Positions 1 through 28,212 of a stretch of 64,000 bases of DNA are shown here, in pieces. This DNA is from Lytechinus pictus (Eukaryota): the NCBI RefSeq assembly GCF_037042905.1, contig NC_087251.1, positions 19,034,001-19,098,000 of the forward strand. Reading direction: 5' to 3'. Below the pieces are notes generated by a model. It saw nothing but the letters and a program-made list of their open reading frames with translations, was not told where the DNA came from and did no database searches. Position 1 is the first letter of the stretch. Every line of letters starts with the position of its first letter. Position numbers and translations under genes: made by a program.

Positions 1-2212
1 GGGAGGGAGGAGAGAGAGGCAGAGGCAGGGAGAGGTACAAGGGTCAAACGAAGGGAGAAGGGGAAATCATAGAGTATGATGAGGGGGGTATTGTTTATAC
101 GGGGTCCATGCGAGGACTTTTTATGACGTCTATCAAGCCTGCAATGCCGTCAATAGCTGCTTCAATGGTATGACAGGAATGCCGGTTCGCCCGCCATCCT
201 AGGGTGTGTTCACATCTTGGTATGATAGCGTGTCGACTTAACCCATATAAACTGGTAAAGGTACGTCCAAGTGTGAACATAACACCAGCTGTTGCCTTAC
301 TGTTTGGCACTTTCACTTTCGGCCTAACCATTATTTTGTTCACTATATATACTTTAGCAGCTCCCAACAACATTTTGAGATAATAATCTTGGGCTTGGGA
401 TGCTCGAGGAATTCAGCTCTCGGAGGGGGGGGGGGGGCAATAGATGTCATTATTGTAATTATCTATAGAGTCATTAATCGATGTAATAACTCTGATCACT
501 GTATATTGCACATTCTTTTCTCATCTGCAAATGCAAGATGTCAGTGCAGAATTCACAAATCTATTTCAAAAGGGCACTGCTCCTTTGCTATGATTATATC
601 ACGTTGAAATCGAGTAAACGAATTTTCATGTTAGGAATATTATTTAACCAAAGTAAATTATTTGAATTACCGGACTTGGTAGATTTACAAGGGAGCTCGA
701 TGCAATGTTTATATGACGTATGTATGGACAAATGGATTATTATGGTATATTTTATTGTAAAATAGAGATCTTCACTATGACACCAAACTTTCAGGACATA
801 TTGCAAAGTTAATTTCAGTTTAGCTTTTTGGAGCTGCAAGAGGAATTATCTCATCAAGTATCAAGTATACGTTAAGATTATCACCAATGTCATTCTCGGG
901 TATCTTTTCTTCNNNNNNNNNNNNNNNNNNNNNNNNNNNNNNNNNNNNNNNNNNNNNNNNNNNNNNNNNNNNNNNNNNNNNNNNNNNNNNNNNNNNNNNN
1001 NNNNNNNNNNNNNNNNNNNNNNNNNNNNNNNNNNNNNNNNNNNNNNNNNNNNNNNNNNNNNNNNNNNNNNNNNNNNNNNNNNNNNNNNNNNNNNNNNNNN
1101 NNNNNNNNNNNNNNNNNNNNNNNNNNNNNNNNNNNNNNNNNNNNNNNNNNNNNNNNNNNNNNNNNNNNNNNNNNNNNNNNNNNNNNNNNNNNNNNNNNNN
1201 NNNNNNNNNNNNNNNNNNNNNNNNNNNNNNNNNNNNNNNNNNNNNNNNNNNNNNNNNNNNNNNCCTGTTATTGACACTGTTATGTTTATGATGATACTAT
1301 TATTACTTAGAGATAGAAAGACAAATCGAAATATTGTCATGATCGTGGCAGAAAAAGTTGAACAGCGATGTTTTAAATATCAGTATAAAATATTACATTC
1401 ATTTATGAAGATATAGTCTATCAAAGGTTAATAAAAATAAATACTAACTTTTTATGAGTGGGCATTATATTGGTGTGATTCAACAACGTACAACTGTAAC
1501 ATATTCTAGCATATAGTTACCACTACCACTACCACTACTTCTATTCAATAAATGGCAAGGACTTTGTAGTTGAAGATTATAAAAGAGAGTCAATTAAAGG
1601 TTAATACTATAGACGACCGTATTGGAATGGGGTCGATTGTTAAACCTCACAGCAGGATTTCATGATGTGATGACCAACAAAGAAAATAAAAGTAATATTT
1701 AAACCCTTTGGTGACCGAATGGCTTGTCAAAAGACTTTATAATCAAACCATTTCAGATTAAACGATGCGTCTTAATCTAATTATAATAAAAAGTTTATGC
1801 TATCCTGATTTGCTCATACAAGACATGGATTAAAATGTACCATTGCATGGCGCCTCATCGTCATGAGATGATGATAACGTGGGTTTATGCGATGTTAATT
1901 TATAAAATGTCGTCAAAACATTATTTCGAATCGGAGATATTGTTGAGAAAGTGGTGTGTTTGTTGGACTCAAACTACAGTGGGTTCTATGGTTCGAATCT
2001 TAGTTCGGAATTTTAAGAAGGCAATCCTCCACATTTCCCGGCTATTTGCTTGCGTGTGGAAAAATTATTGGATAGATATTTGCTTTGTTGATAATAATTA
2101 CATGAAATATAATACTTACATTACATGGAATGTAGTATTTCATATTCTTTTTAATTAGAAAAAATGATTTCATTTGCGATTAGTTTTTACTGTAGTCGTA
2201 CTGTTAACTGTT

Positions 2213-2216
<4 letters not shown>

Positions 2217-2294
<78 letters not shown>

Positions 2295-2302
2295 CATATA
2301 TA
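2217..2302. repeat. (TA)n microsatellite
   Basis: Direct reading. Confidence 0.95.
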
Positions 2303-2947
2303 CATTAATTGTGTTTGAATTAATAAACTAACTAATGAAAACGATTCATTGAAATGAATGAATCAAAATAATACACCCATAACACAGGCACTCTCACAAC
2401 CTTGATGATTGATGCCAAATACATAACAGTGGAGATAAAGATGAAATCCCGAATGAAATACTTGTCAGGATGTTAATTTAGAAAGCAATCCATCATGAGA
2501 AATGTTTACGTCACTTGGCATGTCACTCCATCTCAGATCTATCTCAGACAGCAAGCAGTGCATCTTATTGGTACAAAACGAGGGCGCAAGTTGCGATATT
2601 AATCTTTCCCCTATCATGAGATTTTGTTTTGTTTAATATAATTGTCATCGAAGTCAAACAGAGATCCCTGATCCCAGATGTGGAGCTAAACGAGGTATTC
2701 ACCTTCTCGGCATATTGTTGGCATAGTACCAAGTTGGGTACTATTATAGCACACATTATACATTTATATCTATACATTGTAATTAAGAATGAGATATTTA
2801 TAACCTGAGTACAGTTTAATGTCGTTTCTACTTTTGGTCGGCTACTTGATTTTGACATCTCAATCGCTTTCAAAATGTATGCTTCGGTCAGGGTGTTTAA
2901 TATTTTTCTTTATCTCTCTCTCTCTTTCTATCTTCCTTCTAATCCAG

Positions 2948-5125
2948 GTATCGTCAAACCTGTACTCTCTGGTGGAGAATCGGAAACGGAAGGTCATTCC
3001 GCACCTCAGAAGACACCCTCTCGAGATTTATCCACAGAGAAGAAACACTTACCCAGCTCAAGGAGTCTGAGTAGTCCATTGCCATCGATCACGGTAATGG
3101 CCCCAGCGACCATTCATGAGGAAAGTGAAGCAACAGAATCTGCAATCAAAATACCAACCTCTGAAAGTCCTGGAATAGTCGTGCCTAAGGTCTCATTTAC
3201 GACAGAGTTAACTCCGACACCTCTGGCAGATGTTGATGTGAGAATCCTCGAAAGCAGGGATCCTGGTCGTAACAAAGACGGTGAGAAGGAACAGTCACCA
3301 TCACTTCCAAAGAAACGCATCGCATTGCCAATCATCTGCATTGAGAGTGAATCGGACAAAAGTGACAGCGACACTCCGGCTAACACAAGCGGAGAGAGTT
3401 CTCCTCCTGTAAACAAATCAAACGATCTCTTCGTTAAGTTCTCAGTGAGGCCAGCTTTTGAAAGGCCACCACCGAGTAGGAGAGTTTCAGCTGATTCAGC
3501 CAGTTCAGGGCCGGTGCGTCCATCGGGGGTGATACGGAAAGACAGCCTCGGTATACCATCGGTTGTGAAAGGGGAGATTGCTTACCCTGGCGTCCAACGG
3601 AAAATGCCGACACGAAGGCAGTCTGAACCATTGACAATTACAGTACAGCCACCTGCTATTTGTGAGACAAAACAAGAAAAGGACCAAACAATCTCACAGG
3701 AGGTTATTAGACCAATTCCGCAGAGGGCTGATAGTCTTGGAGTTCCCCAAGTCTTCACGGGTGAAGCATCTTTTCCAATGAAACAACCTCAGACTGGACC
3801 GCCAGGCAATATGCCACCTGCAACTGTCAACCCAAAGAAACCACCAGGTGCCAGGAGGAAAGAAAGCCTCGAGGTACCAACAATTGCAACTGATGAAGTG
3901 TCCTTTCCCCCAATGACAAAGACTGTAATGGGACCACCTCTGGAAAGACCAATCAAGCGCCATCGGCCACTTAGTTTGAATATTCCATCGCTTTCGGCCA
4001 CATCTCCAGAAGAATGCTCAGAAGACAGACCTCCGTTTTCTGCTCCAGCTGCCAAGAGAAAACATACATCTATCCTGAAACGTGGAAACAGTCATGAAAA
4101 ACCCGGTCCCAAAAAATCTGTTACATTCTCGCCGACAGTATCTCCACAGGAGATCCCACCTGAATTCAATTTCGATCGCGAATCTGATGGAGCTATTTAC
4201 ACTCTTCCAAAGCGACCCAAAATGTTCCGCCATTACAGCATTGACTCATCCGATATGTCTTTAAGACAAGAGAGATACCGCGCCGCTGGGAGACAAACCG
4301 CTCAATGTAGAGAAGCTGGTATCCTCTTTTCAGATGATCAACCAAATATCTCTGGTGTGAACAGGACTAGTAGTGATTTCGGCAGCCTTTCTGATTTTGA
4401 CATGAACATGTCTCCTTCAGTATCAGAAGGAAGCAAGGATGTTGACATGGAAACACATACATCGGACATGGAAGAAAGTGATGATGTTTTTGAGGATTCC
4501 AAAGCTCTCGAAATCAGCAATGCCAAGGCTCGATTCCTCGCCGCTGGTGGCGCTCGCGCTGTTATGTCCGTTTTATGCACACAAGACTCAAGTGATTCCA
4601 ATGGTCAAGGGTCAAAGTATTCCAGTGTTGACCTCCTTGAAGCAGAGGCCAAGACCGACTCATCACCGTCAGATGAATCGCCTCAATCAACTTCAGACAC
4701 GACGCCAACAACAGATACCCTTTTCAAGGAACCAGAGACCACTACGATCAAGATTGTTCCTGAAACCGAATCGACAAGAACAATCACTACGCTCTCCTCA
4801 CCTGATAAAGACAAATCTGATATTGGTCCTAAGCGTTTCATATCAAGCGAGGACCTTGACATACGTGCTTCACTTCTCTTCGTGGAGACCGTTCGGAGTT
4901 CTGTGGAATCTGATCTTTCGGAAGGGCGACACAGTCATTCATCTGAAGAAAGTGAGAATTCTGCGAGCGAAGACGTCGTCCGCCTTCCCGCAGCCGATTC
5001 CAATAGTGCCAAGAGTCGGTTCTTCCAGTCTTGTCAAGAGACCAACATCACGCCAAGGCACCATCGTCACCATGGAGAAGATACCTGGAACACTCCGACA
5101 ATACCAGAATTACCTGAACCATTGG
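2948..5125 (+). CDS. Actin-fold fusion gene: giant internal exon (726 codons), Ser/Pro/Glu-rich disordered region
   Basis: Lies within ORF 2875-5208. Pyrimidine-rich acceptor ...ttctaatccag|G at 2948 and donor G|gtgagt at 5125, phase 1 at both ends. GC content is well above the flanks. Confidence 0.85.
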
Positions 5126-6359
5126 GTGAGTACCATAATCTATACTCATATTTCACATATTTGTTAACTATAAAACTATTACGATCCTTAACAATACCGA
5201 CCCTTTGAAAACTATCACTTGTGTCAGGCCTGTTCTTGATTTAGCAAGGAAATAAACATGATAAAGGGATTACTAATTTCTGTTTTGCCTTATGCAAGGT
5301 GTGGCATGATCTTCATCGGAAAAAATGAGGATATCCAGCAATGATTGTTTGATTAAATGCATCTTCTCCTTTAAAAAAAAAGGGGGGGGGGGGTGTTAAA
5401 AATGCCGAGTAAGCTGGTGCTGATTTCTGGTGATGATCACGTTGATGAAGTACTGGTCATTATAAAAATGACAAAGATAACAATTATCATAGTTGTGATC
5501 ATAATAATGGTAATGATGGTGATTGGGATGATTCAAGAGGTATATGCAATCTCTTTTATATGGTAAAATGAATCCGGAAATGAATGATCAGGAGATAGAC
5601 AAATGAAATTCATGAAAATACATCCGAACACATGGGGGAAATACGTCTTTATTGAAAGAATATTCCAAAATGTTATACAGTTTTAATGTATAATTTATAT
5701 CATGAAATAACAAAGAATTTCAAAGCAACGATTTCCTAGAATACAAAATGATAAGCAACGAAGCAAATTTGACTTATAATATTTATTGAACGCTGTGAAA
5801 TAAATAAAATTGAATTGAGATACTAAGGATTTGACAAAAATAATTCCTCATTCATCCCGTGATGATAAACTTACAGTAGTGTTTAATCTCTATCATAATA
5901 CTGTATTGTTTTGCACAGGTTTTTAACTAAATAATGAAAGAACAAAGCGCCACGTTCGCTGTTAAACAAGTCAAAGTTTTTCACTATCATAATAACGAGA
6001 CAGGCCCACCTAATAGTGAACGTATTCATTAATTCCTTTTACACTGGTCGTTGTAATTGCAATGTACGTTAGATGCGATGGTAGGCGCGTGGCGTTTTTT
6101 CTTCTCTCTGTGCAAGGGAATTAAAGATAACGAGTGAAACAGATGACTTCCACGGGTACCGGATTTAGATTCCAGTAGCATCCAGAATAGCATCTTATTT
6201 ATTCCAGATGTTTATATTTAGCTGTCAAGGGCAGCACGATATACGAGTTGAATCCGGGGTTGTTCATCTTTGGACAGCGGGGAAACCATGACGACAAGAA
6301 TGCATGCAATGTGACAGAAGGATGTAGGGGGTAGGGGATGGGTCTGGGATGCCCTAGAT

Positions 6360-7588
6360 CAGGGATTCTCAAATGGTGGCGCGCGCGCCACTTGTGGCGC
6401 GCCGAGCCTTGCGGAGTGGCGCTTGGAAGCCGGTATAAAAAAGTAAAAATAAAGAAAAATACGGGAGATAAAAATGTATCTACCAGTAACCTGGAAATAA
6501 GGATTTGGTGATCATTTTAATACAAAGAGAAAACAAAAACTCTTTACTTGACACTTAATTGATTTCCTCAAATTTTGTCCAATTTAGCACTCGATAACCT
6601 CTATTATAGAGGATCGATGTTGTTCTTTTTATTTATTCTATGCGGTACAAAGTTTATGTGCCACACAAGTGATTTGAAAACCCCGTTTGTAGGATTTCTA
6701 TTTCAACGGCGAGAAATGTTGCATTTCCAGAGTATCCTTTTTGTTTAAGAGTTAAACATCAAATAATGTGATATCCATAGAGCATCCTGATCATTAAAAA
6801 ATATGAATTTGGGGCATAACAAGCAGAAAATTTGTTTCCGGAGCCGATTAAAATCCGAAGGTGTAAAGTGAAATACATACATGCTCAGATGTATTGCCTG
6901 CCGTGATTGCCTGCATGCACTCTTGCTTAACACGAACTGAATAAATGATACTGCACGTGAGTTGTAGAGGGGCAGTTTGGGCGCTAGTGCAGTGCAACGC
7001 CTAATTTTCAGCCCTTGCAAAATCGGGGAACGTAACTTTAGCCACTGGCGTACAGATGGGGGCGGGGATTGGGGGCCCCCAAGTGTTTCACGGCCAAGAA
7101 AACAAAAGGAGAAAAGAGGAGAAAAGGAAAGAAAAGGGAAATATTGTATTATCTTAATATTATGTCAAAATATAGATTTTTGTATTGAAAAGTTCAATAT
7201 TTTTGCTTCAGCTGCCATATCTAGCCCCTCATTTTTTTTTACTCATTACGCCACTTGCTTCAGCCAATAGATCTGGTGCAGAACAGTCTGAACTAGTGGT
7301 ATCATTGGTATGTTGTGAAAAAGTCACTGGTCATTTTTCTTTTAATATTGTGTAGTTTGTTGGCATTTGTATTTCTTCTTTTGATATTAATTAGAGCCCC
7401 TCTGGGCAATTTAAAAGGCCTCATATTCCAAAACTTCTTGGGGCTCTGCCCCCTCGACCCCCACGCCACCAGGGGCCTCTGGGCCCCCCATCCGCTGATA
7501 CATTGCTGGTTTGCGTAATGGATAGTGGAGCATTACAGATTCTCAACAAGAAATGTGGCGCTTCCAAAAAAGTAATTGAGAATGGCTG
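6360..7588. mobile_element. Non-autonomous hAT-type DNA transposon
   Basis: TIRs cagggattctcaa / ttgagaatggctg and a perfect 8-bp TSD CCCTAGAT (6352-6359, 7589-7596). Confidence 0.8.
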
Positions 7589-7759
7589 CCCTAGATTATA
7601 CGTCATCTATACCAACACTCACTCCAAACTCCCGAGCCCTAATCCCATGGGTTGATGGAAGGAGAGGGGTAGCCAATGCTGGTGTAATTATTATACGATA
7701 ACTTAAATTAAGCGCAGTTCAATAATAAACACATAGTAGAAATGTGTGTACCGTTTTTA

Positions 7760-7980
7760 TTATGATAATTACAATATTTTAATTATTATCATTATTATTG
7801 TTATAATCAATTTCATTACTTTTATTATTATTGTTATAATTAATTTTATTATTATTATTATTATTATCATTGTTGCTATCACTACTACTACACTATTACT
7901 AATTCTACTTCTATTATCACCACGATCACCATGATCATCACTATCATTATCACAATCATTATTTATTATTATTATTATAA
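7760..7980. repeat. Degenerate (ATT/ATC)n microsatellite
   Basis: Direct reading. Confidence 0.85.
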
Positions 7981-10025
7981 GGGGGCAGAATGCTTTATTT
8001 GTAACGAAAAGATTTTCCAATCTCTATTTTAGATTTAGCTTTCGTAGTTGCGATGCCATTAATCTTCAATATTAATCCATTTGACACTCCATGTCTCTGA
8101 ATGTTTTACAGCAGATATGGCACCACTCCAATGCTTTGATCATCTATGATGATCATCTTTCTCCACTTGATTATACAGGCTCACCATGCATAACTTTTTC
8201 ATAGATCATTAAGTTACAAAATGACAAGTTCAAACAAATGTCGCGACCCTTTCCTTGACACAATCCTACTCCCCTGGTCCGCCGTTCTCCCTTGCTCATC
8301 AAGAGAAATATGCATGGAATTAAGCAAATGCACCCGGGTTTTTCTCTTAGCACGTTTTACGGCTTTACAGTCCAAGCGAGAGTGAAAGTTCTGATGAGGG
8401 AAAAAGCCGAGGGAATTCTTCTCGTCATCAAAACGACTGCATTTATCACGTGTTGCAGAGCTTTGCTCCTCGTGGTGTATTCGTCATGTTCGTACTAGCA
8501 ACATGAATAGTAATTTTAGAACGAGGATATTCAGATTAAGCCAAGTCTGACACACACATCAAACATTGTTATGATCATGATTAGTAGTATTATGGTGATG
8601 GTGATGATGATAATGATAAGTATAGAANNNNNNNNNNNNNNNNNNNNNNNNNNNNNNNNNNNNNNNNNNNNNNNNNNNNNNNNNNNNNNNNNNNNNNNNN
8701 NNNNNNNNNNNNNNNNNNNNNNNNNNNNNNNNNNNNNNNNNNNNNNNNNNNNNNNNNNNNNNNNNNNNNNNNNNNNNNNNNNNNNNNNNNNNNNNNNNNN
8801 NNNNNNNNNNNNNNNNNNNNNNNNNNNNNNNNNNNNNNNNNNNNNNNNNNNNNNNTAGTAGTAGTTAAGTTATCATGACCCTAAAACATTGTTCCTTATG
8901 TTATGGGATCATTGACATTAGATTGGGTGGATCGAAATGGGCTATCCGAAATATTTAATGAGTTAGGAAATATTGCACGAATCAAGACTGAGTACTAATT
9001 AAAAGATTCACATTCACTAGTTCTACATCTACTGAAGATTCGTAACTCTTAGAGGCTTACTACGAAATATCGAGTAATCGCGTCGGATAAGGAAATCGCG
9101 TAACCTGACCTTTTCGTGAAAAATTTAAATCAATGTCCGAAAGTTCAGGTTTATTGGATTGTGGTACTTGTTAAACTGATGGTTTTGCTTAAACATTTTT
9201 AAACAAGTTGTTGAACAAGTATGTTCAGGGTATCAGCGGGTTATTTGGACCTGAACATTCATAGATTAAAGGCGAATATTTCCCAAATAGCAGAACCTTC
9301 CTTTCCAAAATTAGAGGGGGTATGAAACTTCCTTGCGATGGTTTGCAGTAAGCAATATCTAGATATTAATTTTTCAAAAAATTATGTTGATATATTCTAT
9401 ATATTATGTGACAACAGAAAATAAAAACTATTAATAAATTCTTGTGAAATCTCTTCAACTCTGTGATTTTGCAAAGAGGTGGTGAGATTATCTCGAATAC
9501 ACAATGAACAAAATATAAATCGCATTGTTAAAGAAATGATTGGTTGACTGTTCAAGATAAATGAGAACAATCCAAAAGAATGCGAGATAATGTACATGTA
9601 CACTCATAAGTTATATCAGATTTGGATGATACGACTAAAAGAAAAAAAAAATCGTGTCAACATCCGATCAATTGGACATCATCTTTTTAAACATTGGCTA
9701 AGATTTTCATTTATTTAGCCATGCTATTCATTTGGGTATCACAATTTTGTACATTAAGATTGATCCTTTTAAACTATCATATTATACAGATATATGTTTT
9801 ATTTTCAAGAAACAAAATCATGTATCTTGATTTTTTACAATGACGTCGAGATCGAAACGGCCATTACGAGAACCAAATAGTCCAAACTAGATTGACATCG
9901 TTATCAATTATTGGCTCAGATTTTAACATTATGTAATTCTGTTCAACTCTTAACCAACCATGCATTTCAATATAAATAGACAAGATAATTTCATTAAGAC
10001 ATACAACGTTTTCTTTTCTTTCTAG

Positions 10026-10115
10026 AACTTGATTCGCAGGATGAAGAATCAACTTCAGCTGCTCGTGATGCTGATATCGACGACTCAACATCGACATCGA
10101 GTTCACCATCGTATA
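10026..10115 (+). CDS. Actin-fold fusion gene exon (ELDSQDEESTSAARDADIDDSTSTSSSPSY)
   Basis: ttttctttctag acceptor, gtaagt donor, 90 nt, phase 1-1, open in frame with both neighbours. Confidence 0.8.
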
Positions 10116-10399
10116 GTAAGTGCAGCATAATGACATATCTCATTTCAATTTAATTATCTTTATTTGTTTTGTCACTTTCGTCTTCCTTTTTGTCTTGTTT
10201 CTTCCTGATTTTTTAAAATCTTCTATAATTATATATTTTAAAGAGATACAAGGCGACATTAAACGTAACATTAAGTGCGAAAATTTAGGAGGTGAGACAG
10301 AAAATCTTTTTAAAGTAAAGTTATTGACTACTGTTAATTATTTAACAGATGTTCAATTCTCAAATCTTTATATCCTCAATAATTTCCATCTTCTTACAG

Positions 10400-10819
10400 G
10401 CAGTAGTTGGTATGGTTTTCTAGAGCTTGACCCTTCGCGACCGTCTCTCGCCAACCTTGATGTGGAGATCATCGAAAGCACCGACAACGACCTTTCAGCT
10501 CCTCTTCGAGCGGATGACGACACGGGTGACGAGGTCGAGGATGACTGCGGGAGACGAGAAAATCAAGAAAGTGTCACGTTAACTGGGGCAGAGGATGGTG
10601 GGAGGTCTAGAAGAGGAGAGGGGGAAGAAGGGACAGCGGTGGTAGGAAGGACGGAGGATAAAGATGATGAGGCGAAGGACGCGTGCCCAGAGAGGGCTCC
10701 TATTGCCTCGGTGGGGGTTCCTCTTACCGAAGCAGGGGCACCAGCAGAGGAATCCAGAAGTGTCGGGTCCAGTAAGGACGATGCCTTGCGTCATCAATGG
10801 CCACTAGCCGTTTCATCAG
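10400..10819 (+). CDS. Actin-fold fusion gene exon, acidic low-complexity (SSWYGFLELDPSRP...WPLAVSS)
   Basis: ttcttacag acceptor, gtatgt donor, 420 nt, phase 1-1, within ORF 10120-10863. Confidence 0.8.
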
Positions 10820-12145
10820 GTATGTCAGTGACGTCACTGCTTTCCAGGAAAGTCGTGACATGATACATAGACTGGAAGCAATCGAATATATTGAACTTTG
10901 GAATGCGAATTCACAACAATGTGCGTCCCGATATACTAAAGGTCAGACCTTATGGGTATTGATGGCGGAGTTAATAAATTGTATTTTTATTTTAGTGTAG
11001 ACGGATGGTGATTGGTTTGTAATGGGGGAGGGCTGACTATGAGAGATGGGTTATAGAAAGATGATGAAATTTATGAACAAAATGAGCAGAAATTTAGCTT
11101 AGAATACCTAGACGACTCCAGTTCCAAAATTATACTCAAATATACGGTAGAATTTCAAAACATACCCCTCCCAGAGTCACAAAATAGAGAAAATAGTGGT
11201 GTGCAGCTAGGAAGAAGAGGGTCAAGTGCATTTTACTTTGGTAACTTGCCCAGTGGCGGACCGTGACCCGGAGGAGACGATGATTGGAGGGGCACTGTAT
11301 TGTTGGTGAAAAATGCTGTGCCCCTCCAAAGTTTTGTCTCCTCCTGGTCACGGTCCGCCACGTTAACTGCCCCTTTTGTCGCGCAGCCCCCTATGCCGGT
11401 AAATTTCCCACTTCACGGCGTCACAGTCCACGTCACCGCAGCTAGGGTCAAATAGTTTCCGTACAAATATATTTATAGCACGATATATATATATACATAT
11501 TGCATCTTGATAAAGGTCATTATTTCCGCCAAGTAATCTTGAGACCTGAATAGATAACGAAAGAAGTGGGCGGGTGTCATGGTCACACTCTTGGATATCT
11601 CTTTTCCGACCCAATGAAATAGAGATATGTCACCTTTGGAGCTTTCGAACAAAAGACGGTTGTTACGAGATGAGAAATATATGCGTTGTGGTTTAGTGGA
11701 TGGATCATGAATAACAAGGTATGGGTTTAAACTCTTTCTTTGTCTCACCGATGTCTCGGCCTCTGAGACATAAGACATTTCCATTTGAGACACACTATCA
11801 CTGCCTTGAGACATATCTCAGGGTATAGACTACAATCTTTCTTCTTTTACCTTATATTCAAACTTTATTAGCCCGGGGTTGTTCGTATACTTTTGCTTCA
11901 GAAAGAAAACAATATTCCCAATGGATAGTCATTAGAGTATGCTAGAGACATCAACAAAGTTTTTGGTGATTTTGTCATTTTTCATGTGCCAACTTTGTTT
12001 GAAAAAAAAAAAAACTTTGAATCATAATGGAAAGGTGAACATTCGCCCCTTCTTAACTTCTGATTTTTTTTTCTTGATGCGGAGGTTTGTGAATCATAAT
12101 TGTATTAAATCTAATCCAGTTATTTGGTTTTAACATTATGCCTAG

Positions 12146-12385
12146 CTTCGTCGCCTGGTCAATCTCGACATCGTCGTCACTTTAATACCCCAATCATCAT
12201 CGATAACGGAACATCGATGGTCAGAGCGGGACTCGCTGATGGCGTGGCGCCCTCTGTCACCATCCCGACAGTGGTTGGCCGACTGAAGAAGGACCTTGAA
12301 AGCTTCCGACATCGTAAAGACCTTTACGTGGGTAATGAACTCACCAAAAAGTACGGACTGGTCTGTGTAAGCAACCCCATGAAAG
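12146..12385 (+). CDS. Actin-like domain exon 1 (PIIIDNGTSMVRAG...PTVVGR...DLYVG)
   Basis: Matches actin phosphate-1 loop DNGSGMCKAG and PSIVGR/YVGD motifs. cctag acceptor, gtaggg donor, phase 1-1. No in-frame Met upstream of the actin fold in this exon. Confidence 0.9.
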
Positions 12386-12662
12386 GTAGGGCCATTATAG
12401 TCGTACGTAGGATGATATATAAGATTGCACATATATGCAGCTTTAAAATTGTGATCCAATGGAAATTATAATTCTCTTTCCATTTGAATTCCATTCTGCC
12501 ATCAGTTACGTAACCAAATAATACTTATGTTTTCAATCGGAATTACTGTTGCAAACCAGATTGGAAATCTATGAAGTTAAAATGCGAAAGTTATTTCGAA
12601 ACTTTTATTAATTTACAGTAGGCGTCGTTTTGTGCACCTTGTATGGTAACTTTTGTCCTGTC

Positions 12663-12821
12663 ATGGGATTTTGATTTATACATTGACATTTATATTAGTT
12701 TTGATGTATCACACAATTCGGCAGAGGACATGATGAAATATGATGGAATTTTGATTTATACATTGACATTTATATTTGTTTTGATGTATCACACAATTCG
12801 GCAGAGGACATGATGAAATAT
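12663..12821 (+). repeat. Two-copy 80-bp tandem duplication in an intron
   Basis: atgg(g/a)attttgatttatacattgac...ggacatgatgaaatat at 12663 and 12743. Confidence 0.9.
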
Positions 12822-13062
12822 TAAGCAGACCAACGTAAACCTCAAATTTCCTTATACTTTAGAAATGTTGATAACATAATATTGTAATAATCAGATATTC
12901 GTTTTCTATTCAACAACTATGCATTCAATAGCCGGTTGATGTGGGTAAAAAAAATATATTATTACACACATTATTTCTTAAAATTTTCTTGTGCTTTTTC
13001 GTAACCTACATTCCACAAAGATTAATCATTTTGAATAACCTTTTATTTTGTGCCCCAAATAG

Positions 13063-13208
13063 GAGGGTTAATCGATAACTGGTCCGAGTTGGAATATATC
13101 TGGGACCACGTGATCAAGAAGGAGCTAAATGTCACGTGGGAAGATCATCCAATTCTGCTGACAGAGGTGGCATCGGCACCAAAACGACAGAGGGAAAGGG
13201 TTCTTGAG
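13063..13208 (+). CDS. Actin-like domain exon 2 (GLIDNWSELEYIWDH...HPILLTE)
   Basis: Matches actin GIITNWDDMEKIWHH / EHPVLLTE; phase 1-0. Confidence 0.9.
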
Positions 13209-13615
13209 GTATACATCAAAGACTTAGCAGAAACTTTTGTTTATTCGCTATGAATAATTACGAATGCCTTAAAATTCACCTTGATAACCATTGAATTATC
13301 TACCAAATAATTATTTTGAAGGTTAATTCATAGCATATAATTAATAGTTCTTGTGTTAATGAGACCAACGTCGGTAGATTTTCATACAGATGATAAAATT
13401 TGCAATAAACATTTATTATAGATATATTGGTACGTTGAAAAGAAGTAGATCAATATTGATGTTAATGATGGTCCAAGATGAATCTTAATTCTTAACTACT
13501 ATCATTGATGAACACTGCATACTAATGACTCATAAACTCTGTAAGAGTCAGAAATAATTAAATTCTCTCATTCGCCATCTCTAAATCTTACTTGTTCATG
13601 ATTTCATACCACCAG

Positions 13616-13783
13616 GTGTTATTTGAGACGTACAAGACTCCAGCTTGCTTTGTGGCTAACCAAGGTGCTTTAGCCCTACATGCCAATGGTGAAACCTCTG
13701 GACTGGTCTTGAGCAGTGGTAGCGGGGTAACGGAGATCGTACCGGTATACCAGGGGTGCACCATGTCTCATGCAGTTACCACG
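13616..13783 (+). CDS. Actin-like domain exon 3 (VLFETYKTPACFVANQGAL...SSGSGVTEIVPVYQG)
   Basis: Matches actin MFETFNTPAMYVAIQAVL / DSGDGVTHTVPIYEG; phase 0-0. Confidence 0.9.
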
Positions 13784-14500
13784 GTAAGCATGGGTTTTAC
13801 CATGGGGAGGTGGAGGGTGATCTCTTGGGGTTTATGACTATTGCAACTTTACGATACAGAACGGGAAGTCACGACGGCGACCAATCGAGCATGCACACCA
13901 CATCTTATAAACGCAATGTTAAATATGAAGTTTTCCATCTTCGCAACATTCACATGGTTCCATCACATATTTTGTCTGTAATGTAATAAAACGTTTGAGA
14001 AAGTAACATTACTGCATGTGCAGAATGGATTTCCATTGTTACCCACAATTCTTCGAGATGCAGCCAAGACAGTTCTATCCCGGAGACAAGTCTGGTAAAG
14101 TCCCTTTGTTCCAGCGATGAGAACAGCTCACTGTTTCGCAAAGTTCGTATCTACAATGTATAACTGGCCCATTTTAAGACTCCCACGGTAATATCTTTTA
14201 CATCTAAATCTGGAACAGCAGTATTCAATTTAATGGCACATCTTGCTGTACTTTTATCCGACGCATATTGCTCGAATTCAGTCAGAACAGCTGACAATAC
14301 AACATGTCGATGATATCCCAAATAGTTCGTCACTAACTGATACTTTTTAATGTCTTCATTGTGATGTCGAGAAAGCATTTGATTATATTTAATTATTCTT
14401 AAGGTCATCACATTCATGAAAAATAATCCTCAAAAATCTTGTTTTTAATCATCGATAATGTGGTAGCACTGGATTTATCTCCTTCATCTCATACATGCAG

Positions 14501-14636
14501 ATGCCAGCAGCGGGCCGAGGGGTCACCAGAAGGCTTCAGCGAATCTTGATGGATGAAAGAGCTTTCTCTGTTTCTACGCCGTTTGACCACCGCATTCTAC
14601 AAGAAATGAAAGAAAACATGGCGTATGTCTGCAAAG
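14501..14636 (+). CDS. Actin-like domain exon 4 (MPAAGRGVTRRLQRIL...MKENMAYV)
   Basis: Matches actin LAGRDLTDYLMKIL / IKEKLCYV; phase 0-1. Confidence 0.9.
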
Positions 14637-15103
14637 GTAAGAATGCTTCTTTAATCAAGTTGTATTCATCGTCGGACTGTAGATCTCGTGGAAATGAATT
14701 TTAGACTTCACCAAATTCACATGGTCTTTTCATTCTCCACATAGGTGTTCAATTGGGCTTCTGCTATAGGATTGAAATCTTTACTCAGTGTAATGACCGC
14801 CATGGCACCTGGCGGATTTAAGGAGCAAATTTTAAGCGTTGCAAAGATTCTCTCTTCAGCTTTAGCACGCCCTGGCAATGGAAGTGTGATATGATTAGAC
14901 GTAATATGAACATCAACACCACCTCGAATTATTTTACATTTTTACATAATAGACAATCTTTATTCTTGGTTACCCACGAAATTTTACCACTTCATTGAGT
15001 CACCATTTGTCATATCTACGGACATTGAATATCTAAATTTGTGAATGCAGATTTATACCTGATAAACCTTTTTATCTTTCCGCTGTTTCTTGAATCTGGT
15101 CAG

Positions 15104-15287
15104 ATTATGAGAGTGAGATGTCACATTCAGATTTGACTACACCAATCAAATACTCTCTACCTGATGGCTCATCAGTCATGCTCCGGAAGCGAGATCTCTT
15201 CCATTGTTCGGAAACCATCTTTAGACCTGACATAGTTGGACTACCTCAGAAGGGACTGGTTCAAGTCCTCAGTGACTGCCTTGAAAA
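15104..15287 (+). CDS. Actin-like domain exon 5 (DYESEM...KYSLPDG...CSETIFRP)
   Basis: Translated by hand; matches actin DFEQEM / YELPDG / CPEALFQP; phase 1-2. Confidence 0.9.
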
Positions 15288-16019
15288 GTAAGCAATTTTC
15301 GGGGCTGAAGTAGCAGTGTATTTGACGGCACTGCCATTATTACGCCTATTTGTATAGATAGAAAACCAGAAGAGGAATGATAATTTCGTGTCAAATAAAA
15401 ATATTTCATGATTCTTTGATAATATTGTCATTCTGAGTAAAAAAGTTGATTAGTCGGAATAACAATGACCCGACTTTTGCTATTACTTTGATTACTGCTG
15501 ATCCTTTTCCTCGCTCGATAAGGCAATATAGAGACAGTTTTTAACTTGGTCAGTCTTACTCGGCAAAGTAATGTGGGTCAATCGTTCGGAGGCCAGAAAC
15601 AAATATCTGAGTCTGACATATACGAAAAAAGGTCATCAAAGTTCCCGGGACGGCTGCCAAGAGTGCCCTCTCGTTGTCCTCTAAGGCAAGGTCCATTGGA
15701 TCTGTCACTGGTGTGTAGCAACCAGAGCGATGTCGATCGAGTCAGAATAACGCTAATCTTGACAGATGATTATGTACAAAATATTTAAGATGAGAACAAG
15801 AGTGTCATCGATCGCAACTCTCAAAATAAATATAACCAGATTACCTTGGCGAGCTTGACCAACCAAGCCAAACTTGATTTGCATATAACTTCGATAGATT
15901 TGAAAGAATGGCAGCAAAGGGAGGGGAGTGTTAAGGTTATTCATTATGTATTTTATTATTTCTTTAATTGACATTATATGAGATTCTGATCTTACATTAA
16001 TCCCTTATCTGTCGATCAG

Positions 16020-16287
16020 GTGCAACCCAGAGTTCCTTGCTGGTCTGGATCCTACAATCCTGTTAGCCGGTGGTAATACCAAACTCCGTGGATTTACCGA
16101 ACGACTCCAACACGAACTAGACAAAGGTGACTTCAACCGGACCGCCATTGCCCCCGACAACCGCGACATCACCACCTGGATCGGTGGTGCCATCTTGGCC
16201 TCGCACTCGAGCTTCGCTGACAGGCTGATCACTAGTGAAGACTTCGAAGAGTTCGGGACCAGTTTAGTCCACAAACAGACTATCTGA
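16020..16287 (+). CDS. Actin-like domain terminal exon (ILLAGGNTKLRGFTERLQHEL...WIGGAILAS...VHKQTI*)
   Basis: Matches actin LSGGTTMYPGIADRMQKEI / WIGGSILAS; TGA ends at 16287. Confidence 0.9.
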
Positions 16288-17092
16288 AGTCGAGGGCTCT
16301 GTGACCAAGGTGTCGAGTGTAGACAAACTATCTGGAAGATAAAATGACCGTGATGGTCGTAGCATCAGCTGACGCCATCATCAGTCTAGTATCCAGGAAA
16401 GAGATAGGCTTTTGCCTTGCTTGTACGGGCGGGTAGATACGTTCGGGGACGACAATCTCCCTTCCTGAGGTTTCTGTCGTTCGTTGAGGCAGGTAGCTTG
16501 AAACCATTGTGCCGTTTTTCTTGACTAAACGTATATCTATATCCAACATGGTAAAAGCAAACAATTCGCTTGAAATTTAGCAAACATCTACTGAAAGATA
16601 ACAAATCAAATTACGTCCGTTTGTCTTGGAAGAATCCACAATCATGATTTAATCAGAATGAAATCCTTAACATGAATAAATCTTATTTTTTTTATCCTTA
16701 CCTTTCTTTGAATATGAATTGGTAAGATAAAAGTAGTTCTTTTCTATCCCTGTTTTCTATACCTATACTCTGCATGTATACCTCAACAGTAAAACTCTGG
16801 GAAATCCATTACTTTTTCTAAATCAAACTCTCCCCAAACCATGAGCATCGATAGTGAGAATAGAAATGTATCGACCAAAAATAAGTCCCAAATGACATTT
16901 AAAATTAATTCGAATGAAAATGAGAGATTCAGGAAAATGTCAGTTAAAGAAGCATAGGAGCCACGGGAATGAGGGTACGTCCCCAATGATTATAGTAATC
17001 AAAATTAATGATTTAAAAACGGAGGTGGAGGGCAAAAATAATAATCTTAATTGAGAATAAACTCAGGGCATCTAAAAGTTGTCTTCCCCCCT

Positions 17093-18464
17093 CAACCGCG
17101 TAGCTAGGATTTCATTTTGGAGGGGGCGGTAAATGCACGCGAAGCGTGCCAACACTTACAGAGCGCGCTTCGCGCGCTCCCTAGGGGGTGGGTGCAGGAA
17201 GCCTTCGGTGTTTCATAAATGAAAATGAAAAGGAGCCGTCTCTCTTGTCTCTAGTACCAATATCAGCTCCAATTTAGTTGACTTTATTGTGATTTCGAAC
17301 CTTATTTATAATAATAATGGAGGACATTAAAATAATTATTATCCCGCGCAAAGCGCGGAAGCTAAAGCGTTTTATCATTTTTTTCGAAAATAAAAGGGTC
17401 CCGAGAAGAGGTTATTCTCTAAGTCATATTGAATGCTTCCCTTGGAAAGATCAGATTTGATTACAAACAATTTAGCTACAGTGCATATCTTTAACTCACA
17501 AAACAGAGGAGGAGGGTATATGCCGGGAGGAAGATATTCATCCCCACGCAGATCAATTCGAAACTCTGAAATTTCAAAGGGCGGACGTTTCATCAAATGC
17601 AGATATATCTATACCCATCGGCTCTAATTCAATAGATTTTCTAAGATTATTGAACTTCATTACAAGGAAAATAGTGCGCAAAAAGTTGAAACTCTGTGAT
17701 TTATTGAAATTATATAAAAAAGGATGATTCATAATGTCATTGACTTATCCTTAAGCGCTTCATTTTGAATGATAAAGATCGAAACTTAAGTGTCATTCAA
17801 AATTTCAAACTGAGGGCGCAAAATAGGACAGGAAATGAATGTGTAGGGAAATTACACGAAGTTTAATAGAATTTGATTTAAAAAATTGTACTTTTTTATT
17901 TTATACGACACAAATTTTATACCTTCCTCTTTTTAAATTAGGAACCTGTTTGCCCCCAAATTATGGTTGTTCAGTAATGAGCTGAAAAGCGGGAGAAGTT
18001 GCCTATATGGAGGTGACGGCAGAAATTGATTTAAAGATTTTACCCGCCCGGAGCCGACCCGACCAGAGGTTGCGCGATCAATTTGAGAAAAAAAAGATAA
18101 CTTCATACACTTCAGCCTAACCTTACTCTAATTCCATGCCCTCATGTATACATTTGAACTTGAACTGGCAAGAAACACATATAGCTGAGGTGGAAAAACA
18201 GGGTTAGAGAAAGGGTGAGGGAAACAAAGGAGAAGTGACTGCATTATTGTCATTTAACCGCGCGCAGCGCGGAAGCAAAATTCATAAATATGAATTTAGT
18301 GAAGGAGTTTCTCTTTTGAGAAAAAAAAAAGAATAAAAAGAAAAACACACAGAGCTACATTTCTTACCTTTCCTCCCTTCGCTTTTCATTTTCTCCTCTC
18401 TTTTTCCTTTTTTTTGAGGGGGGGGGGGGAGACCGCCCCCACCGCCCCCCTGGCTACGCGCCTA
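17093..18464. mobile_element. Non-autonomous hAT-type DNA transposon
   Basis: Ends caaccgcgtagctagg / cctggctacgcgccta; perfect 8-bp TSD TCCCCCCT; its 3' end recurs at ~52320-52500. Confidence 0.75.
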
Positions 18465-18559
18465 TCCCCCCTGCCCCCATATAAATATCATCTGTTGCCA
18501 CCCCTACTTGCTTTGAATACGAAAAAGTCTTTATTACCATTAATATGGAATGTTGAAAT

Positions 18560-19150
18560 TGAATTCAAGTAGCAAACGTCTACGGGTTGATGGATAGCCA
18601 TGATAGCTGAAGACCAAATAATGTGAGAATAATAATTAGCCCATGGTACACGTCCCACATCGAATTTCAATACCCCCTTTCTCTAATAATTATGGAGATT
18701 TGGCTCCACGACGCGCAACAAATCCAACAACATAGAAAATCTATTGTCAAATGTCCTTCAGAGCAAAGAGCAACCAAGAAGTCTTTATCGAAAATAGGTG
18801 AATCAAAACAGCAGTTTCGTCCCGGACTCTGGACAAACGACATATTTGCAATTTTTCGTCAGCTCCGAAGCCTAGAACGAAACTGCTGTTCCGGTTCATA
18901 AAGGTCGACAAAGACCTCCCAGACTTTCATTGCTATTTGACGGGAACTTTTAATACTGTATTCTTGAGCCCGTTGTGCGTCACAACGCCAAAACTCCCTA
19001 CTGTTGGAAGAAGCAACAGAATTCTTTAATCGCTGGTGACTCATTAATAACATTGAACGGTCACGATTGAACGTGGCAGTCTCATTTAGGAAATCTGATA
19101 GTATCGGATCTTTCAGACTTTATGATGACGATATTTCATCAATTGTTAGA
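18560..19150 (+). mobile_element. Possible decayed LINE reverse-transcriptase fragment
   Basis: QQFRPGLWTNDIFAIFRQL resembles the RT motif QxGFRxGRSTxDxIFxLRQL; heavily degenerate. Confidence 0.3.
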
Positions 19151-20594
19151 TGTAAGTGGCAAAAAAAAAATTGATATAATTTTGAATGATTATGATGATA
19201 AAGAAATCTACACGTACCCATTGTTATTATGAGTATATTTCATTTGCTATTTTGTATTTGGGCTTTTATTCATGTAGTTCTTAAAAATCATTTTATTGTA
19301 TCTTTCATATTAACCAAGATTTGTACAAATGCTTTATTTTCTTTATGCTTTCTTTAATAATTGTTTAAATTGCTCTTTCAAAAAATATCTCGGATAACTT
19401 ATTTGTTTGTTATTTTGTGTTTTGTGTTATTCATTTACTAATAACACTAATATGAAAGTGGTATATTATTTGGTATTTAAAGCATTATTCGAAAACATAA
19501 AAGTGAAAATATAAATCTATATTCATGCACCACGCACAATTTTATTGTATATATTCATTCACTTCTCTTTATTTTGAGTTCACAGATTAAGTTTAAAGGA
19601 GAATGCTGCTTCCATGTTATTGAGGAAACCATCGAAAACACATATACTTATACTATCTATGCAAAAGCTATCAAAGTATTTTTTCTAAATGTAAAAAAAA
19701 CAAAACAAGTATCTTTGTAACGAAGTTGATTGTGATCAGATAGTGTTCTTGAAACGTCATTATTCAATTTAAAGAGTGGATGAATAAATAACATTTCGTA
19801 ATTTGGGACGGATAAGTATAAAATGATGTGATATTTGTGTGCCTTACCATGAAATAAAGACGTCAGCCAAAGAATCGGAAATAACTAACCAATGAGAGAA
19901 GTTCTGATGAGATATGAGAAGTTTTATAGCCAATCATCGAAATCTACCTTCCAAGTAAATATAACAAGTGAAGTGAGCTGGTACGCTGCTTGATTGTTTA
20001 AGGTTTGATGTTAAAAAGAAGATGGGCTGCGCTGAAATGAATAGTTCAATTTTCACCAGTTTGTACAAAGAAGATTATCGTAGATGTAAATGATTATACC
20101 TATATTGAAGGAAAATATGCGGTGACCAATTATAAGGTTATATTGAGCCAATAAATTAGAGTCTTGTATAGAAACTGCCACGCATTTATTATTTTTGATA
20201 ACAGTAACGCGTTTTAATATCGCGTGTAAGAAAAGTGCATCTATCAGCCTAATCGATATTGTGGAAAATGTCTACTCTTTATTATCTTGCTTTTGAATTA
20301 TCTTTGGTGATTAATATTGTTTGAAATGTTTGTGCACTAGTAGGAAGACTCAGAATTCAGTAGATGCGTTACATAATGCTGACTGGTGTATTGCGTTGAA
20401 TTGTAAATTCTGGAGTGTTTTGGACATTAAAAGCAAATTTTAAATAATTCGAAGATTTTGTTTGTTTGCTTGCTGGTCTAATCTCATAAAATTCAAGAGG
20501 CTTTTGAAATTATGAAATATACTCAACTATCTATGCCATAACTGAAATTATGCTCATGTTTATTATCAGTAAATGTACGGTATTCGATTGGCAC

Positions 20595-21520
20595 ATGATG
20601 ATAATGATGGTGACGATGATGGTTATGATGANNNNNNNNNNNNNNNNNNNNNNNNNNNNNNNNNNNNNNNNNNNNNNNNNNNNNNNNNNNNNNNNNNNNN
20701 NNNNNNNNNNNNNNNNNNNNNNNNNNNNNNNNNNNNNNNNNNNNNNNNNNNNNNNNNNNNNNNNNNNTGATCATGAAGTNNNNNNNNNNNNNNNNNNNNN
20801 NNNNNNNNNNNNNNNNNNNNNNNNNNNNNNNNNNNNNNNNNNNNNNNNNNNNNNNNNNNNNNNNNNNNNNNNNNNNNNNNNNNNNNNNNNNNNNNNNNNN
20901 NNNNNNNNNNNNNNNNNNNNTGATCATGAAGTGACGATGATGATGAAGTGATGATGGTGATGATGATGGTGATGATGATGGTTATGATGATGTTGATGAT
21001 GAAGTAACGATGATGATGAAGTGATGATGATGACGATGTTTATGATGATGTTGTTGATGATGATGAAGTGATGATGATGATGTTGTTGTTGATGGTGATG
21101 ATGGAGGGGATGAGGATGATGATAATGATGATGAAGTGATGATGGTGATGTTGAAGTAACGATGATGATGGTTTTGATGTTGTTGATGATGAAGTGACGA
21201 TGATGATGAAGTGATGATGGTGATGATGATGGTTTTGATGATGTTGATGATGAAGTGACGATGATGATGAAGTGATGATGATGTTGTTGATGATGGTGAT
21301 GATGGTTATGATGATGTTGATGATGATGAAGTAACGATGATGATGAAGTGATGATGATGATGTTGTTGTTGATGATGATGGTGATGATGGAGGGGATGAG
21401 GATGATGATAATGATGATGAAGTGATGATGATGGTAATGATGATGGAGGGGATGAGGATAATGGTGATGATGAAGATGGAGATGATAATTATTTGTAGTA
21501 GTATGATAATGATGATGTTG
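20595..21520. repeat. Compound (GAT)n microsatellite with higher-order blocks, partly N-masked
   Basis: Direct reading. Confidence 0.95.
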
Positions 21521-27009: not shown

Positions 27010-27716
27010 TTAATTTTCTCTATAAAAATCACCCCGCTGTCCCCCAGTTTTCTGTTCCAGTCTGACTTCTGCAATGACCATGTCATGAGTGACTGCCTTG
27101 CACATGTCATAGATGGTCAGAGCTGCTACAGAGACCGCAGTCAATGCCTCCATCTCGACTCCAGTTCGACCTATGCATTTGACCTTTGACCTGATGAGTA
27201 CGCTGAAAGATTCCTCATCCAGGTGAAGGTCAACATCCACCTTCTGTATGGGGATGTTATGACAGAGTGGGATGAGGGCGCTAGTCTGCTTGGCTGCCAT
27301 GATGCCAGCAAGCTGTGCAACCCGTAAGACATCACCCTTGGCCATCTTGTTCTCCTGGACAAGGTAGAAAGCCTCCTGTCCAAGCTGAACCTTACCTGAT
27401 GCCACCGCCTCCCGCACCGTCGTCTCCTTCCCACTCACGTCCACCATTTCTGCTTGTCCGGAGCAGTCAACGTGGGTCAGCCTCAAATCGGACCCAGACC
27501 CGTCTTTGCAGCTTGAGTCGTCAATCTTACAGGACTTTGTTGAGGAATGGATCCAGGCTCTTGAACTATGATAGGTTTTGTACGAATGGACACCATGATT
27601 GAATAAGATTGATACTGGAAGCACATGCTGATTTGCTACATTAATTGAAGAATACACGCTGTCAGGATTCCTGTGATGAAAAGTACCCAACATTCTAATC
27701 TCCATAGGAGATGAAT
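27010..27716 (-). CDS. MOCS1: MOCS1B (MoaC-like cPMP synthase) exon
   Basis: LTHVD..MVDV, KGDVL..A.LAGIMAAKQTS.LIPLCH, TGVEMEALTAVSVAALTIYDMCKAV, KTGG. Acceptor tttattacag is phase 1; the 5' boundary is less certain than the domain call. Confidence 0.92.
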
Positions 27717-28212
27717 CTGTAATAAAAGAATAAACATCAACAAATAAAGCCATTAGAATGCAAACTTTAATAACATGGCAAAGTGTCATTGGTAATATAT
27801 CTATATTAATCATCACTTTGTCCATCAATTGGAATTGAAAAGAACTGCAGAATTTTAAAGGATGACATGGGTTTTTTTGAGGTGTTAACATAGTCTTCTT
27901 TTGGCAAAAGGACAAATGTTATTAAAAACTTGCAGGATTTTCATGAAAAAAGCAAAACATAAATGTATATGCATGCATCGTGATACTGAGAATCCACTCA
28001 CCATCTGTGAGTAGGATTTAACTGAAAAACTCCTCTTTTTATAGCCCTACTTTCACAGGGTGATAATTGTCTTGGAATGGTGTCAAAAGTCTCTATAAAG
28101 TGTAGTGCTTGAATCTTATTTAGAGTGATTATAAATGGATAGAAAGTCAAAGATATGGAAGGATAACTCTCATCCTACCTAGATCATATTTGAGATAGGT
28201 GTGGAAAAGTTG

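Follow-up and report, generated by a model that had tools for sequence, protein, structure and literature searches.

Gene Structure and Transcription

The stretch of Lytechinus pictus DNA analyzed here, called the window below, covers 64,000 nt (assembly GCF_037042905.1, contig NC_087251.1, positions 19,034,001 to 19,098,000 of the forward strand) and holds the larger part of a real, single-copy and transcribed gene for a protein that ends in an actin fold. Rebuilt from the window, nine exons in 2948–16287 give one frame of 3,830 nt (1,275 codons and a stop), with AG at all acceptors and GT at all donors, in agreement with the nine phase-matched exons that an earlier reading of the DNA letters alone had proposed (the original prediction). 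The model matches residues 323–1597 of the L. pictus RefSeq protein "mucin-5AC-like" (P0011, 1,597 aa) without gaps and at 99.4% identity; for exon 2948–5125 the identity is 99.3% (P0011 residues 322–1047). The coding exons, and an assembly gap between two of them, are given here with residues of conventional actin and positions of the Pfam Actin profile where these apply.

2948–5125, + strand: coding exon 2 of the gene, 2,178 nt, encoding P0011 residues 323–1047 (linker predicted to be disordered)
8628–8855, no strand: assembly gap (run of N) inside intron 5126–10025, coding frame unaffected
10026–10115, + strand: 90-nt coding exon 3, from an acidic linker part rich in Ser; 10115/10400 spliced in three runs
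10400–10819, + strand: 420-nt coding exon 4, also acidic linker; three runs show 10115/10400 and 10819/12146
12146–12385, + strand: first actin exon, actin residues to about 73, with phosphate loop 1 (DNGTS); Pfam Actin 5–66; joints seen
13063–13208, + strand: actin exon, residues about 74–121; Pfam Actin 68–115; joints seen; intron at actin 121/122
13616–13783, + strand: actin exon, residues about 122–177; Pfam Actin 116–170
14501–14636, + strand: actin exon, residues about 178–222; joints seen; covered by the Actin match of the whole protein
15104–15287, + strand: actin exon, residues about 222–284; Pfam Actin 260–294; joint 14636/15104 seen
16020–16287, + strand: last actin exon with the stop codon, residues about 285–375, with GGNT and WIGG; Pfam Actin 318–409

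Scanned exon by exon, those starting at 12146, 13063, 13616, 15104 and 16020 match successive positions of the Actin profile, and the best PDB matches of the last one are conventional actins; exon 14501–14636 scanned alone gave no Pfam match. The actin start exon at 12146 begins mid-codon, and no Met lies between the upstream stop and the actin fold.

Transcription is documented by public sequencing runs. In a run search, 0.86–0.99 of the words of exon 2948–5125 were present in runs X14, X13 and X1, and for 10000–16287 the share was 0.21–0.24, near the exon fraction of 0.26. Logan contigs of these three runs, which come from two studies, were aligned with 9950–15949; they are spliced and therefore RNA-derived. 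The GT..AG joints 10115/10400, 10819/12146, 12385/13063, 13208/13616, 13783/14501 and 14636/15104 occur in all three runs, and depth over the introns is zero. The last 30 nt of exon 2948–5125 appear as loose contig letters ahead of 10025, i.e., 5125 is joined to 10026, and the loose end after 15289 is the start of exon 16020–16287. A single contig (X1 record 1, 2,488 nt) takes in 38 nt of exon 2948–5125, window exons 2–8 and about 1 kb more, into exon 9. The actin exons are thus spliced onto the upstream exons in one mRNA, and the joints 5125/10026, 10115/10400 and 10819/12146, which the original prediction had singled out for checking, are present in the RNA-derived contigs. No alternative first exon was seen in 10820–12145, where the sole covered island is a dispersed repeat (see below). 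As transcripts join 5125 to 10026 and the alignment of the model with P0011 is gapless, no coding exon is hidden in the gap at 8628–8855. Another sequence, P0001, was first taken as a possible transcript and was rejected: it is a genomic contig of a related species, in which the intron flanks align too, at 82%.

Position 2948 is an acceptor and not the start of the gene. The first coding exon lies 16.6 kb upstream of the window (G000:C7:19017395-19018358, or L011:3395-4358); it is a single exon of 964 nt that encodes P0011 residues 1–322, has a good Kozak context at its start and ends in GAAG ahead of GTAAGT. Its junction with 2948 rests on the RefSeq model, on colinear orthologs and on 29 extra 5′ nt of one contig. 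The full coding sequence then has ten exons, nine of them in the window, and 4,794 nt for 1,597 aa, with nine residue differences between the protein of this genome and P0011. The expectation of a large protein therefore stands, whereas its size, put earlier at 1,270 aa or more, is 1,597 aa once the upstream exon is added. In the 812-Mb assembly, other loci reach at most 46% identity in any exon, and the gene is single copy.

The Actin-Like Head

The last ~380 residues, here called the head, form a complete actin fold. On P0011 the Pfam Actin family (PF00022) matches with an E-value of 1.5e-84 and 284 bits (cut-off 27), over profile positions 5–409 of 410. The AlphaFold2 (AF2) model of the head, built on a 50-sequence alignment, has a mean predicted local distance difference test score (pLDDT) of 91 and a predicted template modeling score of 0.88. 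Compared with solved actins by Foldseek it reaches template modeling (TM) scores of 0.88–0.93 and root-mean-square deviations (rmsd) of 2.0–2.9 at 36–38% identity, and over the ~370 aligned columns there is no large insert relative to actin. By sequence, too, the best PDB matches of the head are all conventional actins (~275–284 bits), to which it is ~36–40% identical. The original prediction of a complete C-terminal actin fold, whose first exon opens mid-codon and has no Met before it, is confirmed.

Residues were tabulated for six sequences of the family described below and 44 other actins and actin-related proteins (Arps). All six family sequences keep D11, N12, G13, Q137, G146, T148, G156, G158, G168, K213, E214, G301, G302 and R335, and five of them keep K18, which is R in Lytechinus. 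The loop of the head that corresponds to the DNase I-binding loop (D-loop) of actin is similar in length to it, and WIGG is kept. A second set of residues, near-invariant in the 44 others, is replaced across the family: G15 (E/D/S), H73 (G/D/E), Y143 (H), D154 (S/T), D157 (S/G), H161 (E), R177 (T/V), L349 (H), M355 (R) and K336 (D/T/E); R62 and Y169 (C/F) are replaced throughout the family as well. Phosphate loop 2, in exon 13616–13783, accordingly reads SSGSGVTE vs DSGDGVTH in actin. The signature of SSGSGxTE, H143, H349 and R355 did not occur in any of the 44 others.

In actin, D154, H161 and Q137 act in hydrolysis. The cleft between subdomains 1 and 3, into which the D-loop of the following subunit and the helices of WH2 and RPEL partners fit, is lined by Y143, L349 and M355. 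From the pattern of kept and replaced residues we infer that the head binds nucleotide, is altered in catalysis and has a re-specified cleft, and it probably does not behave as a normal filament-forming ATPase.

The N-Terminal Segment and the Linker

In four species of urchins and sea stars, Kyte-Doolittle windows above 1.6 occur only in residues 1–44, a segment that ranks with the best conserved of the protein and has basic residues after it. Such a segment would suit an anchor that tethers the protein to a membrane and leaves most of it in the cytosol, an assignment that we find slightly better than even.

In the linker (residues 51–1214), between this segment and the head, Ser makes up 15%, Pro and Glu 9% each and Thr 8% of the residues. 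Actin was the sole Pfam domain found in the protein (window exons and P0011), the N-terminal 330–400 residues of two species contained none, and an ESM Atlas search with residues 1–330 returned no usable match. For residues 680–1060 AF2 gives a pLDDT of 45 and only short helices, which fall on the AKxRF islands described below. The linker, ~1,170 residues in all, is predicted to be disordered, by the model for 680–1060 and by composition and the lack of a Pfam domain for the rest. The spliced contigs and the AF2 result thereby uphold the arrangement first read from the DNA, an actin fold behind a long region predicted to be disordered.

Short conserved motifs stand out in this linker when eight sequences are aligned, among them a homolog from a TARA metagenome that is only 28% identical:

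3532–3987, + strand: three repeats of ~19 aa, [RK][RK]xSL[GE][VI]P..[VI]..[GD]E[VIA][SA][FY]P, from the alignment
4057–4128, + strand: pair of putative docking motifs for protein phosphatase 1 (PP1), KRKHTSILK-x11-KKSVTF (SILK, then RVxF-type), invariant in eight of eight aligned sequences
4522–4599, + strand: best-conserved linker island, AKARFLAAGGARAVMSVLCTQDSSDS; of three [ST]AKxRF[LF] units it is the first (eight sequences)
4831–5037, + strand: second and third [ST]AKxRF[LF] units, KRFI...SLLFVETVRSSVESD and NSAKSRFFQSCQE (eight sequences)

The SILK + RVxF-type pair is the strongest functional lead that the sequence offers. SILK (residues 696–699) and KSVTF (711–715) lie in the region predicted to be disordered, and K-R-K-H, S-I-L-K and K-K-S-V-x-F-S-P are invariant in all eight sequences, which gives the family form KRKH-x-SILK-x11-KKSV[TS]FSP. 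Experimentally defined PP1 docking motifs comprise [GS]IL[KR] located N-terminal to [RK]x(0,1)[VI]{P}[FW] (PMC9813921), definitions that the pair fits. Whether the pair docks PP1 we regard as evenly balanced, judging from these motifs.

The ~19-aa repeats join a basophilic kinase site with an LxVP-like core. Copies are kept in Diadema, Patiria, Asterias and the TARA homolog, and each of the five full-length echinoderm proteins has two or three copies of the form [RK][RK]xSL[GED][VI]P...E[VIA][SA][FY]P; MHRSHWVAKP is also invariant in these five. In the island AKARFLAAGGARAVMSVLCTQDSSDS, A-K-x-R-F...G-A-x-A-V-x-S-V-L-C-T-Q-x-S is invariant, and AF2 places a short helix there amid low-confidence surroundings. 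The invariant residues of the second and third units are R, S-x-L-F, V-R-x-S and S-A-K-S-R-F..S-C. Calcineurin motifs of the PxIxIT type were looked for in the protein and not found.

Homologs, Conservation and Phylogeny

Queried with exon 2948–5125, a profile-free search of 1.8 billion representatives found six proteins, two of which are long and carry a full Actin domain at the C-terminus: XP_071502994 of Diadema antillarum (P0003, 1,560 aa) and XP_038075690 of Patiria miniata (P0004, 1,425 aa), both named "uncharacterized protein". Diadema has a second family protein of about 1,560 aa (P0007). The Diadema actin domain as query added P0012 of Asterias amurensis (1,340 aa) and P0011 (1,597 aa) itself, as well as a clear ortholog in the hemichordate Ptychodera flava, the 655-aa "actin, plasmodial isoform-like" P0016. 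The proteins of Diadema, Patiria and Asterias have the same architecture as that of Lytechinus, and between two urchin genera the actin domain is 66% identical. Ptychodera has in common with them the actin domain, the AKSRFL units (three ahead of the actin domain) and the SLEVP-type repeats. Upstream of P0016 (L013:8538-10000), open frames contain RHSLEVP, RESLEVP and a fourth VKSRFL unit; as the RHSLEVP and RESLEVP copies stand in open frame just upstream of the annotated start, the P0016 model looks truncated at its 5′ end. The family is thus conserved in echinoids, asteroids and one hemichordate, an acorn worm, and the original description of an orphan, lineage-specific protein has to be given up. 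RefSeq holds gene models of the family in five species, under names that are uninformative or misleading.

Two marine metagenome contigs, L002 (a TARA scaffold, protein P0002) and P0006 (ENA), carry homologs of the linker exon with SILK, KKSVTF and AKxRF intact, and presumably stem from plankton samples that contained DNA of unidentified echinoderm-like animals. A search by shared words for long proteins that carry this actin domain brought up echinoderm proteins, POTE, a multi-actin protein of a chytrid and nothing else, a result that does not exclude other phyla. Free-standing database relatives of the domain are actins and centractins, at 33–40% identity. Literature searches on the RefSeq accessions and locus names of the family found no papers, and a search on orphan actin-related proteins in sea urchin found nothing relevant.

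A maximum likelihood tree (quick search, 92 sequences) unites the five family actin domains included in one clade with 100% support in the Shimodaira-Hasegawa-like approximate likelihood-ratio test (SH-aLRT) on a stem of 0.74, in the order hemichordate, then (urchins, sea stars). This clade falls outside the centractin (Arp1) clade (23 rows, 99% SH-aLRT) and apart from Arp2, whose sole labeled representative (P0106) groups elsewhere and is 28% identical to the actin domain of the window protein and 29% to that of Diadema. The sole uncharacterized actin-like protein of a reptile in the set is also outside it. Among the 92 sequences the tree gives the clade no resolved placement within the actins; the position outside Arp1 and Arp2 is in line with the original prediction, and identity to conventional actin is ~36–40%. 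Introns at positions 73, 121/122, 177/178, 222 and 284 of the actin numbering are common to Lytechinus and Ptychodera, which points to an old intron-bearing lineage and not to a recent retrogene like POTE-actin.

Repeats and Neighboring Features

The intron before the actin exons contains one further feature:

11250–11360, no strand: palindromic dispersed repeat of ~110 bp, resembling a miniature inverted-repeat transposable element

A first look gave 836 candidate copies in the assembly, matching both strands. In the RNA-derived contigs the repeat occurs only as short, high-depth pieces with loose ends on both sides. Readings of the island 11150–11349 as an intronic RNA or as another first exon were rejected, as it is this ~110-bp palindromic repeat with hundreds of copies.

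Elsewhere in the window, a short dispersed repeat of ~118 bp at 750–868 has at least 40 copies with 87–96% identity on many chromosomes. Rfam found no family in 1–20000. The block 20500–21650, beside two N gaps, is of low complexity with a strong GC skew (0.48); the His-rich or Ile-rich open frames in it suggest a microsatellite-type rather than a coding sequence. Downstream on the other strand, 27010–27915 (–) is a long open frame whose C-terminal half resembles by eye a MoaC domain, which belongs to molybdenum cofactor biosynthesis (LTHVD...GKETTVREA...IPLCH...GVEMEALTA); the frame is probably an exon of a MOCS1-type gene.

Discussion

The gene, its architecture and the conserved family can be accepted with high confidence. 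The novelty lies in how the architecture is read; the gene model itself is already in RefSeq, as "mucin-5AC-like" or "uncharacterized protein". The former name is a misnomer driven by composition, as a mucin domain is absent and an actin fold is present at the C-terminal end.

We lean, by a small measure, toward a membrane-tethered PP1-targeting scaffold with an actin-like head. The N-terminal segment would anchor the protein in the membrane with its bulk in the cytosol, and the KRKHxSILK-x11-KKSVTF pair would recruit the catalytic subunit of PP1. The neighboring RRxS/LxVP-like repeats may serve as phospho-regulated docking sites. The head would be a binding module rather than a normal polymerizing ATPase, and such a pseudo-actin could link the scaffold either with the actin system or with a partner of its own. 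A more ambitious form of the idea, an ambulacrarian, so far unrecognized class of membrane-anchored pseudo-actins with their own PP1 docking and phospho-regulated motifs, whose head plugs into, caps or seeds cortical actin filaments, is speculative and in our estimate quite unlikely; if true, phosphatase signaling would be wired directly to the interface of membrane and actin, for example in eggs, sperm or embryos.

Several points weigh against the scaffold reading. The joint from the first coding exon, which carries the putative anchor, to 2948 is absent from the reads used here and is supported by the RefSeq model, the orthologs and the 29 nt of one contig. The hydrophobic stretch of ~42 residues could alternatively form a hairpin or a buried helix, or serve as a reverse signal anchor. 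RVxF and SILK motifs are short and occur by chance, and they draw their weight here solely from deep conservation in a region predicted to be disordered. At the Ptychodera locus no clear KSVTF was found within the 10 kb upstream that is readable, so PP1 docking may be specific to echinoderms. As most nucleotide-contacting residues of the head are kept, it may bind ATP and might even co-polymerize with actin. In the raw reads of X16, a run of RNA depleted of ribosomal RNA, no exon reads were found in the 6% of the run that was read, a result uninformative on tissue. Finally, the binding, localization and enzymology of the protein are what we infer from its sequence.

The alternative that bears most directly on the head is that it assembles with actin, by co-polymerizing, capping or seeding, so that cortical F-actin is anchored to the membrane, or nucleated, by the protein and PP1 docking is secondary or absent. 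The fold is complete, of canonical length and free of inserts, the D-loop is similar in length, DNG, K18, Q137, K213/E214, GG and WIGG are kept, and the Arp2/3 complex and Arp1 are examples of how actin-like proteins can cap filaments or act as their template. However, the residues of the cleft that receives the D-loop are replaced family-wide (Y143H, L349H, M355R, Y169C/F), as are R62, H73, R177 and the catalytic D154 and H161, and identity to actin is just 36–40%; on these residue comparisons we consider direct assembly with actin unlikely. A different possibility is that the family is the ambulacrarian ortholog of a named member (Arp3–10, or a relative of ACTL7, ACTRT or ACTL9) that gained a long N-terminus. 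Vertebrate testis actin-like proteins, too, have the canonical size and an identity of ~40% to actin, and for ACTL7 a short N-terminal extension is described (PMC9976968, PMC10925299). Yet the family clade is separate from Arp1, Arp2 and the reptile actin-like sequence, the head has none of the large inserts that characterize Arp3, Arp4, Arp5 and Arp8, and SSGSGxTE, H143, H349 and R355 recur in none of the 44 other sequences; we consider this origin quite unlikely.

The two remaining alternatives, that of two joined genes and that of a mucin, are contradicted by the data. A gene for a disordered protein and a separate actin-like gene could have been joined artificially by read-through or chimeric assembly: 1.3 kb separate exons 10400–10819 and 12146–12385, the actin module could stand alone in principle, and contigs spanning two genes are not by themselves proof of a single transcript. 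However, three runs from two studies show 10819/12146 as an exact GT..AG splice that keeps the phase, its contig depth equals that of the flanking exons, the fold is preceded by neither a Met nor an alternative first exon in 10820–12145, and the same fusion is found in independent RefSeq models of five species; the chance of such an artifact is minimal. That the protein might be a secreted or surface mucin-like glycoprotein, with the hydrophobic N-terminus as signal peptide, would agree with that N-terminus and with a linker in which Ser (15%), Pro (9%) and Thr (8%) are abundant. Against it, there is no VWD domain, cysteine-knot or tandem repeat of Pro, Thr and Ser, Actin is the sole Pfam domain, the ~42-residue hydrophobic stretch far exceeds the core of a signal peptide, and actin folds, PP1 motifs and basophilic kinase sites are cytosolic; we hold a mucin to be highly improbable.

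Actin-family proteins are among the best catalogued eukaryotic proteins, and a class that combines an anchor, a PP1-docking linker and an altered actin fold, as proposed for this family, is outside the standard catalog of actins and Arps as far as we know. It has been kept over roughly half a billion years. If the proposed functions are true, it would be a natural experiment on what the actin fold can do once freed from polymerization, and a possible new route tying PP1 to the cell cortex. In Lytechinus and other sea urchins, injection of mRNA, morpholinos and CRISPR are routine. On the practical side, the RefSeq name "mucin-5AC-like" is misleading.

Comparison with Known Systems

Like conventional actin (e.g., PDB 6nbw, 1yag, 6iug), the head has the complete four-subdomain fold at canonical length (TM 0.88–0.93), keeps most residues of the nucleotide-binding scaffold and shares one classical intron position (121/122). 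In contrast to it, the urchin domain is only 36–40% identical, carries fixed changes at G15, H73, Y143, D154, D157, H161, R177, L349 and M355, evolves much faster as a family and is the C-terminal end of a 1,597-aa protein; where conventional actin has Q137, D154 and H161 intact for catalysis, the family keeps Q137 and changes the others (D154S/T, H161E). Arp1 and Arp2 have the same fold, and the family is ~33–38% identical to Arp1, but both keep DSGDGVTH, which is lost in the family, and the family lies outside their groups in the tree.

The vertebrate testis proteins ACTL7A/B, ACTRT1-3/ARPM1 and ACTL9 resemble the head in having actin-sized, actin-derived domains at ~40% identity, and they themselves lie outside the conserved Arp classes. 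They differ in being soluble proteins of ~370–440 aa, with neither a membrane anchor nor a 1,100-aa linker, and to our knowledge they contain no SILK/RVxF pair. For ACTL7 an N-terminal extension is described (PMC9976968, 10.1101/2025.03.27.645694).

The overall layout, a large protein with its actin module at the C-terminal end, is shared with POTE-actin (P0013, P0014) and with filactin of Dictyostelium. POTE proteins were the sole other long animal proteins found with the actin-domain query, and are 35–36% identical to the family domain. POTE-actin is a recent retrogene fusion of a near-unchanged beta-actin with ankyrin repeats, and filactin carries filamin-like repeats. Unlike both, the present family is ancient, has introns of its own and combines its head with a predicted disordered N-terminal part in place of a folded partner domain; no Pfam domains of the ankyrin or filamin type were found N-terminal to the actin module.

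Among regulators of PP1, the closest parallel is with Phactr1-4, spinophilin/neurabin and phostensin, which use RVxF-type docking and tie PP1 to actin. No sequence similarity of the family to these proteins was detected; what they have in common with it is disorder, which in the family is predicted. They bind actin through RPEL or F-actin-binding segments and contain no actin fold, whereas in the family described here an invariant SILK + RVxF-type pair, the candidate PP1 docking site, accompanies a domain of the actin family itself in the same protein.

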